The translations under genes and the position numbers were made by a program. Under the pieces are notes generated by a model. The model made no database searches. It was given only the letters and a program-made list of their open reading frames with translations, and was not told the DNA's origin. From positions 1,711,578 to 1,775,116 of the forward strand of contig JAWQFM010000011.1 in NCBI GenBank assembly GCA_033442325.1: a stretch of 63,539 nucleotides of DNA. The letters run 5' to 3'. Source of the DNA: Salpingoeca rosetta. Taxonomy: Eukaryota; Protista; Choanoflagellata. How positions within the stretch are numbered: position 1 is the stretch's first letter; each line of letters begins with the position of its first letter. This document shows positions 17,972 through 18,878 of this stretch, piece by piece.

Positions 17972-18517
17972 ATGACGGCGCTTGGTGTGGGTGAGATGAA
18001 GGTGTTTGATGAAGCAGGGGAGGAGCACACGATGGCGGAGCTGTGCGACAACCGCAAGGCCATTGTTGTGTTTGTGCGGCACTTCTTGTGATTCTACTGC
18101 AAATACTACATTGAGGACCTGGCCAAGGTGCCGCAAGACCACCTCGGCAACGTGGCTGTCGTGGTCATCGGCTGCGCACCGCACCGCTTCATCGCGCCCT
18201 TCAAGAAGGAGACAAACTTCCCCTTTGAGCTCTACTCCGACCCAGACCGCAACGTGTACAAGTCCCTGGGCCTGAAGCACGCGCACGCGTCGGCATCTAA
18301 GAGCGAGCACATGCGCTCCTCTGTCGTCATGGGCCTGCTCCAGTCCACCTGGCGTGGCCTGAAGAGCATGCGCATGCAGGGTGATGTCAAGCAGCAGGGC
18401 GGCGCGTTTGTGGTGGATCAGAAGAAGCTCATCTTCTCCCACCAGGACAAGTCCCCAGATGACCATTGCCCCATCAACACCCTCCTCACAAAGGCCGGCT
18501 TGGAGACCTTCTTCTAG
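17972..18517 (+). CDS. PRXL2C: Peroxiredoxin-like 2C / AAED1 (AhpC-TSA_2, SelU-related) selenoprotein, 181 aa, Sec at codon 40
   Basis: Intronless frame from ATG 17972 to TAG 18517 with one in-frame TGA (18089-18091): VVFVRHFL-U-FYCKYYIEDLAKVP...LYSDPDRNVYKSLGL...QGDVKQQGGAFVV, matching recalled AAED1 VVFVRHFLCYICKEYVEDLAKIP...QGDPAQQGG on both sides of the TGA. Confidence 0.9.
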
Positions 18518-18826
18518 CCATGTGTGGCGGACAATTGCGCGCCGTCTTCGCTTCCGTATGGCTATAGCCGTTGTTGTACCTGAATTGTTGGTTGTCACGT
18601 CGTATCAGCTGTCACATCACAACATTACAGCGGTTCGGACAGCACGACGGGATGCGTTGTCTTCTCCTTGCTTGTTGCTTGTTTCCTGTTGTTGTCAGCT
18701 CAATTCCCAGTGTCAACTGTCTCCATTTTTTTTTTGTTTTTCGCTGTGCCGAGCCTGCGTTGTGTCACATTCTTGCGCAGCAAGTCCAGTCTGAGCATGC
18801 ACACCAAGTATGCGCGCGACTGCGTT

Positions 18827-18878
18827 GTGATGGCCCTGCTGGGAAACTCGTCTGCGCACGAGACCACGGGTGCCTGAT
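18827..18878 (+). promoter_or_regulatory. Eukaryotic SECIS element (type II, GUGA core variant) in the 3' UTR of the PRXL2C-like gene
   Basis: GTGAT-GGCCCTGCTGG-G-AAA-CTCGT-ctgcgc-ACGAG-a-CCACGGGTGCC-TGAT: UGAN/NGAN quartet, ~10 bp helix II, unpaired AAA and a 5 bp apical mini-stem, ~310 nt after the stop codon. Confidence 0.85.

Follow-up and report, generated by a model that had tools for sequence, protein, structure and literature searches.

Gene, reading frame and in-frame TGA

The window that we analyzed is a stretch of 63,539 nucleotides from the choanoflagellate Salpingoeca rosetta (G000:C11:1711578-1775116); unless a contig is named, positions are those of the window. On its plus strand, translation gives an open reading frame that runs from an ATG at 17972 to a TAG at 18515-18517 and contains a single in-frame TGA at 18089-18091. 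The part upstream of the TGA (17972-18088) encodes Met1 to Leu39 and ends in the conserved beta-strand motif VFVRHFL. The TGA itself is codon 40, a predicted selenocysteine (Sec40, the U of a UxxC motif), and the downstream part (18092-18517) encodes Phe41 to Phe181 followed by the TAG stop; it contains an AhpC-TSA_2 redoxin domain with the resolving Cys43. Thus, 39 residues, Sec, and another 141 residues make a product of 181 residues with the local sequence VRHFL-TGA-FYC, and both the coordinates and the translation agree with the frame of 181 codons put forward in the original prediction. The ATG at 17972 is also the start codon of the annotated S. rosetta model PTSG_04672, and the start of the homolog P0003 agrees with it. 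The genome (55 Mb in 68 contigs), which we searched for further copies of the gene, for the Sec machinery, and for other selenoproteins, holds a single copy of this PRXL2C-type gene. The gene is flanked by (CA)n/(GT)n microsatellites at 17860-17970, 18954-18995, and 19207-19304, the first of which lies directly upstream of the start codon.

Family assignment and position of the TGA

The C-terminal piece of 141 residues matches the Pfam AhpC-TSA_2 model (PF13911) with an E-value of 1.5e-20 and 74.1 bits (cut-off 27), covering profile positions 8-113 of 114. It is 100% identical to the S. rosetta hypothetical protein PTSG_04672; its other relatives include a protein named PRXL2C (49% identity, E 9e-35) and unnamed eukaryotic proteins with 52-69% identity. 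A cluster labeled "C9orf21 protein" was among the top matches of an Atlas feature search, C9orf21 being the older name of AAED1/PRXL2C. The only solved structure found by sequence was that of PRXL2B (PDB 9us9; E 2e-5, 27 bits), where residue 47 of the chain is the counterpart of the cysteine of FYC; we take this residue to be the second cysteine of the PRXL2B CxxC motif. Judging by these best matches (PRXL2C at E 9e-35 versus PRXL2B at E 2e-5, together with the C9orf21 cluster), PRXL2C/SelU2 appears to be the closest named relative, and we assign the protein to this subfamily on the strength of sequence similarity.

Similarity to the family extends to either side of the TGA. Residues 41-72 of P0008, a homolog with cysteine at this site, are matched by the N-terminal piece (44% identity, E 1e-8), and the C-terminal piece aligns to P0008 from residue 74 on; thus, the TGA corresponds to Cys73 in the sequence RHFL-C-FVC of P0008. 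The redox motif U/C-x-x-C that follows the RHF strand is present in both proteins, as VRHFL-U-FYC in S. rosetta and RHFL-C-FVC in P0008. The proposal that the TGA takes the place of the first cysteine of the AAED1/PRXL2C CxxC motif is borne out by this alignment and by the PF13911 match.

The transcript and a false intron in the public gene model

The deposited model PTSG_04672 has 167 residues, and it joins ...RKAIVVF directly to DLAKVPQ... across a 42-nt GT..AG "intron" at 18074-18115 of the plus strand. The segment cut out in this way encodes VRHFL-TGA-FYCKYYIE. This intron exists in the deposited model only and is not supported by RNA reads. Raw reads from three stranded RNA-seq runs, together with one contig set, were mapped to positions 17300-19700, and no splice joint was found anywhere in the region in the three runs, at depths of about 35-80. 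The bin 18029-18109, which takes in the TGA and the greater part of the supposed intron, had depths of 81 and 62 in two of the three runs, where it was the highest bin, and 34.5 in the third. Plus-strand coverage is unbroken from about 17948 to about 19081-19100; the former position is the limit of coverage within a skipped microsatellite and does not place the 5' end. No alternative letter was seen at 18089-18091 in the three RNA runs and the contig set, and RNA and DNA reads alike give TGA, neither TGC nor TGT, which speaks against a sequencing error. The only variant in the region was G>T at 18416, seen in a single run (4 of 35 reads).

Loose ends consisting of A-runs in four reads place the poly(A) site near 19100, and no earlier end was reported. 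With continuous coverage on the same strand up to this site, the 3' UTR extends from 18518 to 19100 (about 583 nt). Since coverage is unspliced up to the poly(A) site, the mature mRNA contains both the UGA and the entire 3' UTR including positions 18827-18878, where a hairpin had been predicted. A convergent transcript of the neighboring gene on the minus strand ends at about 19054-19062, as indicated by loose ends consisting of T-runs; because the mRNA of the PRXL2C-type gene ends near 19100, the two 3' UTRs share about 40 nt.

As deposited, PTSG_04672 is wrong: a false intron takes the active site out of it. The suspicion that automated annotation would mishandle this gene has therefore proved justified: VRHFL-U-FYCKYYIE is exactly what the model drops. 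The EukProt model P0003, which comes from a related species, lacks the same VRHFL-x-xxC segment, and its gap looks like the same intron artifact in another species.

A SECIS element in the 3' UTR

A type-II SECIS element with a GUGA core lies at 18827-18878 of the plus strand, as indicated by a constrained fold, a pattern filter, and conservation. The GUGA tetranucleotide (18827-18830) is followed by helix II (18832-18842 paired with 18864-18874), an unpaired AAA (18844-18846), an apical stem (18847-18851 paired with 18858-18862), and UGAU at 18875-18878. Helix II comprises 10 bp with one bulge on each strand, the internal loop is GAAA/A, and the apical stem of 5 bp closes a loop of 6 nt. A type-II element should have (A/G)UGA on the 5' strand and GA on the 3' strand, which together form the quartet, as well as a helix II and an unpaired AA at a distance of 10-13 nt from the core; here, the AAA is 13 nt from the GUGA tetranucleotide, or 12 nt if counted from GUGAU. 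The distance to the start of the element is 310 nt from the stop codon and 738 nt from the UGA.

We used a SECISearch-style filter that asked for (A/G)UGA, a helix II of at least 8 bp with no more than two bulged bases per strand, an unpaired AA at the proper distance, and GA on the 3' side. This filter, which was modeled on the SECISearch pattern after the candidate had been seen, gave one match on both strands of the whole 63.5-kb window (127 kb), namely, 18827-18878. Twenty random windows generated with a first-order Markov model gave a mean of 1.05 matches, which corresponds to about 0.005 expected in the 583-nt UTR on one strand.

The element is also conserved. The closest homolog with flanking sequence is encoded on a TARA marine metagenome contig, L005, whose protein product (P0002) is 69% identical to that of S. 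rosetta. Outside microsatellites, the only similarity between the two 3' UTRs is between 18814-18879 of the window and positions 992-1061 of L005 (71% identity over 70 nt, E 6e-6). In this alignment, the cores UUGUGAUGG, the AAA, and CCUGAUG are identical, and helix II shows one compensatory change from a C-G pair in S. rosetta to a U-A pair in L005 as well as a change of another pair from U-G to U-A.

Covariance models were less informative. The Rfam SECIS_1 model (RF00031) gave no match by cmscan, either on 17000-20000 or on the 101 nt from 18800 to 18900, and genome-wide it found only two sites of the MsrA type, both at 25 bits and thus short of the gathering score of 35. On six homolog contigs, it likewise gave no match and missed all of the homolog SECIS elements; we therefore take it to be insensitive in this clade and do not read its silence as a refutation. 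A model of our own, R1, built from the pair of SECIS elements of S. rosetta and L005, recovered only L005 and, weakly, a SECIS element of another S. rosetta gene, that of Sec-MsrA (E 0.039), and none of the more distant homolog elements. We dropped R1 as a window-independent SECIS model, as it was too sequence-specific. Divergent elements were therefore compared by constrained folds, MAFFT having given no structural alignment of them. The fold of the 101-nt region is no more stable than that of shuffled sequence (z = +0.93), and helix I is weak. In sum, the claim of a well-formed SECIS at this site holds as to the fold, its being the sole filter match in the window, and its conservation with L005, but RF00031 gives it no match.

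TGA or cysteine at this column in the homologs

A TGA occupies the same column in ten groups of homolog contigs (among them L004/5, L011/12, L013, L014/15, L016, L038, L039, L040, and L041). Where these homolog contigs include upstream sequence, the codon in the column is TGA in every case and never TAA or TAG. The residues before it are VFVRHFL, except in L040 and L041, which have FIRHFG or FVRHFG; those after it are xxC, except in L040, which has xxS. Cysteine is found in this column in P0008 and in L042-45, and aspartate in a mollusc PRXL2C, P0009 from Liolophura sinensis (RHFL-D-YTC). The U/C exchange that was expected at the TGA column of an ortholog alignment is thus seen across the homologs. 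Between S. rosetta and L005, the base changes flanking the TGA on either side are synonymous. Many database "proteins" of this family begin just after the U/C column, which is what open reading frame callers that stop at the TGA would produce.

The metagenome scan yielded nine loci, few of which had 3' sequence. SECIS-like hairpins were present on the coding strand past the stop codon in L005, L013, L016, L039, and L011. Their helix II sequences are unrelated, and pairing, AA spacing, and core are kept. In L017, a contig encoding a cysteine form, no SECIS-like hairpin was found downstream.

Two of the contigs with a TGA carry distant PF13911 homologs with 27-29% identity: L040 (23 kb; position 1438), with RHFG-TGA-MIS, and L041 (2.8 kb; position 796), with RHFG-TGA-AHC. 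These may be bacterial Sec forms with a SECIS in the coding region.

Selenocysteine machinery and other selenoproteins in S. rosetta

The genome contains the core of the Sec pathway that the original prediction called for (tRNA-Sec, SepSecS, and eEFSec), and selenophosphate synthetase (SPS) as well. The gene for tRNA-Sec, with a UCA anticodon, is located at G000:C34:611578-611663 on the plus strand (L001:1501-1586) and matches Rfam RF01852 with 67.1 bits (cut-off 47). Its 9-bp acceptor stem and 6-bp D stem were identified by Infernal; ARAGORN missed the gene. A previous study found no tRNA-Sec gene in either choanoflagellate genome (PMC6188563), and our Infernal match contradicts this for S. 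rosetta. SepSecS is encoded by four collinear exons at C22:1202161-1203642, recognized by TIGR03531 and missed by the Pfam profile PF05889, and SPS by five collinear exons at C8:994425-996420. An eEFSec exon is located at C28:837835-837996; its best PDB match is human eEFSec (E 4.5e-26, versus 2e-10 for archaeal SelB and 1e-6 for EF-Tu). The top matches to TIGR00475, which we considered as eEFSec candidates, proved to be eEF1A, eIF5B, mitochondrial EF-Tu, and eRF3/HBS1. For PSTK, the genome gave weak matches only.

Two further genes have a TGA at a catalytic position. Sec-MsrA is encoded on the minus strand at G000:C1:2354181-2355686 (L049, L003), with the TGA at the catalytic cysteine (ALG-TGA-FWG) and a GUGA-core SECIS downstream. 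This SECIS, about 630 nt past the last matched exon, is the genome's best RF00031 match (25 bits), and its flanks are the same as those of the PRXL2C SECIS: UUGUGAUG at the 5' core and CUGAUGU at the 3' core. Sec-GPx is encoded on the plus strand at G000:C17:394367-394829 (L053, L055), where a TGA interrupts the frame at the canonical site (NTASG-TGA-GLANQ). In the stretch of about 1.5 kb downstream of its last matched exon, no SECIS was found by either version of the filter.

The second RF00031 match has an equal score of 25 bits and is located on the minus strand at G000:C1:2346662-2346721 (L002:1501-1560), at a distance of 7.5 kb from the SECIS of MsrA. Upstream of it, we found no MsrA exons but a unit of about 139 nt in four or more tandem copies (L002:2220-2760). 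This match may represent an orphan duplicated 3' UTR or belong to another gene.

Alternative explanations for the in-frame TGA

Three other explanations have to be weighed, which even taken together are improbable: conservation, the SECIS element, the Sec machinery, and the RNA reads all count against them. The hardest to credit is that PTSG_04672 is right, so that a 42-nt intron at 18074-18115 removes the TGA and leaves a 167-residue protein without the CxxC motif. The segment does start with GT and end with AG, its length is a multiple of three, it stands in the deposited annotation, and the EukProt model P0003 skips the same segment. However, its joint is absent from all three stranded RNA runs, in two of which depth is highest in the very bin that it occupies; moreover, 42 nt would be unusually short for an intron, and the residues lost would be the most conserved motif of the family, VRHFL-U/C-xxC-K. 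Also highly unlikely is that the TGA is a true stop, which would make the locus a pseudogene or the source of a 39-residue peptide, with the 141 downstream codons as untranslated remnants. Such a reading would fit the way in which the open reading frame lister splits the gene at the TGA and the fact that Rfam finds no SECIS. It sits poorly with the downstream codons themselves, which retain 49-69% identity to their relatives, match PF13911 in full, and contain no second stop, and with the retention of the TGA in ten groups of divergent homolog contigs, the changes that flank it being synonymous. Nor would remnants be expected to come with a conserved SECIS in the UTR and a well-expressed mRNA that shows no sign of decay.

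The least improbable of the three, although still very unlikely, is that the UGA is read through without selenium by a near-cognate tRNA for Cys, Trp, or Arg. In that case, the redoxin made would be Cys-like or inactive, and the presence of the hairpin would be a coincidence. On the one hand, stop codon readthrough exists in eukaryotes, and the Sec machinery can insert cysteine at UGA under selenium deficiency, which we count in favor of this explanation. On the other hand, the genome encodes the core Sec pathway (tRNA-Sec, SepSecS, SPS, and eEFSec) and other selenoproteins, the hairpin shows every hallmark of a SECIS, its conservation includes a compensatory change, and the codon occupies the position of the catalytic cysteine, where U/C exchange is typical. 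Decoding of the UGA as Sec accounts for these observations, and it is the reading that we adopt.

A probable Sec-containing PRXL2C/SelU2-type oxidoreductase

We conclude with high confidence that the locus is a single-copy S. rosetta gene for a 181-residue, Sec-containing thiol-disulfide oxidoreductase of the PRXL2C/SelU2 type (AhpC-TSA_2) and that the public model needs to be replaced. The mRNA carries the UGA at the position of the catalytic cysteine and a SECIS in its UTR, and the core machinery is encoded in the genome; with these in place, the product is very probably a selenoprotein, Sec incorporation being predicted from sequence features and transcripts. The 181-residue Sec enzyme of the original prediction is supported by the unspliced TGA, the SECIS, the machinery, and the U/C exchange. 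None of the refuting outcomes named with that prediction (a misread TGC or TGT, an intron removing the TGA, a transcript that stops short of the hairpin, a genome lacking Sec machinery) was observed.

By analogy with established selenoprotein biology, the SECIS would recruit SBP2, eEFSec, and Sec-tRNA(Sec), so that UGA40 would be decoded as Sec and would not terminate translation. Sec40 would then sit at the N terminus of the first helix of the thioredoxin fold as the attacking redox residue. It would be expected to form a selenenylsulfide with Cys43 of the UxxC motif, and this bond might in turn be reduced again by a thioredoxin- or glutathione-type system.

Implications

A Sec-containing SelU2/PRXL2C (from Trichoplax) and an AhpC-type UxxC selenoprotein (from Monosiga) have already been published; the present result is mainly a correction of annotation and reveals neither a new mechanism nor a new family. 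PTSG_04672 regains the active site that it had lost to a false intron, and, together with Sec-MsrA and Sec-GPx, a documented member is added to the selenoprotein set of S. rosetta, an organism for which our literature search found no description of selenoproteins. The published statement that choanoflagellate genomes are without tRNA-Sec is contradicted. In addition, the range of the Sec form of SelU2/PRXL2C, so far a single placozoan, now takes in the sister group of animals as well as several marine eukaryotes that are uncultured.

In our view, it is likely that the PRXL2C/SelU2 of the last ancestor shared by choanoflagellates and animals contained Sec, that the Sec form is widespread in marine protists, and that bilaterians acquired their cysteine forms later. 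If the Sec form is indeed ancestral, S. rosetta, which is genetically tractable, would become a model in which to study how Sec was decoded by means of GUGA-type SECIS elements when animals arose, and choanoflagellates would have a working Sec system, contrary to the earlier report (PMC6188563).

Comparison with known selenoproteins

The closest known system is SelU2, the C9orf21-like lineage, in which one Sec-containing member was described, that of Trichoplax adhaerens (Jiang et al. 2012, PMC3473315). The S. rosetta protein shares with it the PF13911 domain and the RHFL-(U/C)-xxC motif, with Sec replacing the first cysteine, whereas the host is a choanoflagellate and not an animal. Compared with the animal proteins P0008 and P0009, the S. 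rosetta protein is short (181 residues) and lacks their N-terminal extension. The same study reported that GUGA SECIS elements are common in sponges and some green algae, and it treated sponge AphC-like proteins as distinct from SelU1-3.

An AhpC-family UxxC selenoprotein from Monosiga brevicollis was the best new candidate in another survey, which found relatives in sponges, in other protists (Emiliania huxleyi), and in bacteria (Mariotti et al. 2013, PMC3753652). Compared by description, these proteins and the one from S. rosetta have in common an AhpC-type thioredoxin fold, a UxxC motif (CxxC in vertebrates), a 3' UTR SECIS, and, in the case of Monosiga, a choanoflagellate host. As for the bacterial Sec homologs of this AhpC-family group, L040 and L041 are the contigs in our set to set beside them, as they carry a TGA in the same column.

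In vertebrates, SELENOU2 (PRXL2C) is found only in cysteine forms, and Sec is confined to the SELENOU1 branch (PMC13134290, 2026). SELENOU1/PRXL2A of fish and birds belongs to the same Prx-like2/AhpC-TSA_2 superfamily and, likewise, its redox motif begins with Sec and its 3' UTR carries a SECIS, but it represents a different paralog branch. The prostamide/prostaglandin F synthase PRXL2B (PDB 9us9) has the fold and the CxxC register in common with the S. rosetta protein; it is distant (27 bits), and the likeness is one of sequence, which by itself gives no indication of prostaglandin-related activity in S. rosetta. Within the same genome, Sec-MsrA also has a TGA at the catalytic cysteine and a GUGA-core SECIS with the same flanks, whereas its protein family is unrelated and its helix II contains a 2x2 internal loop.
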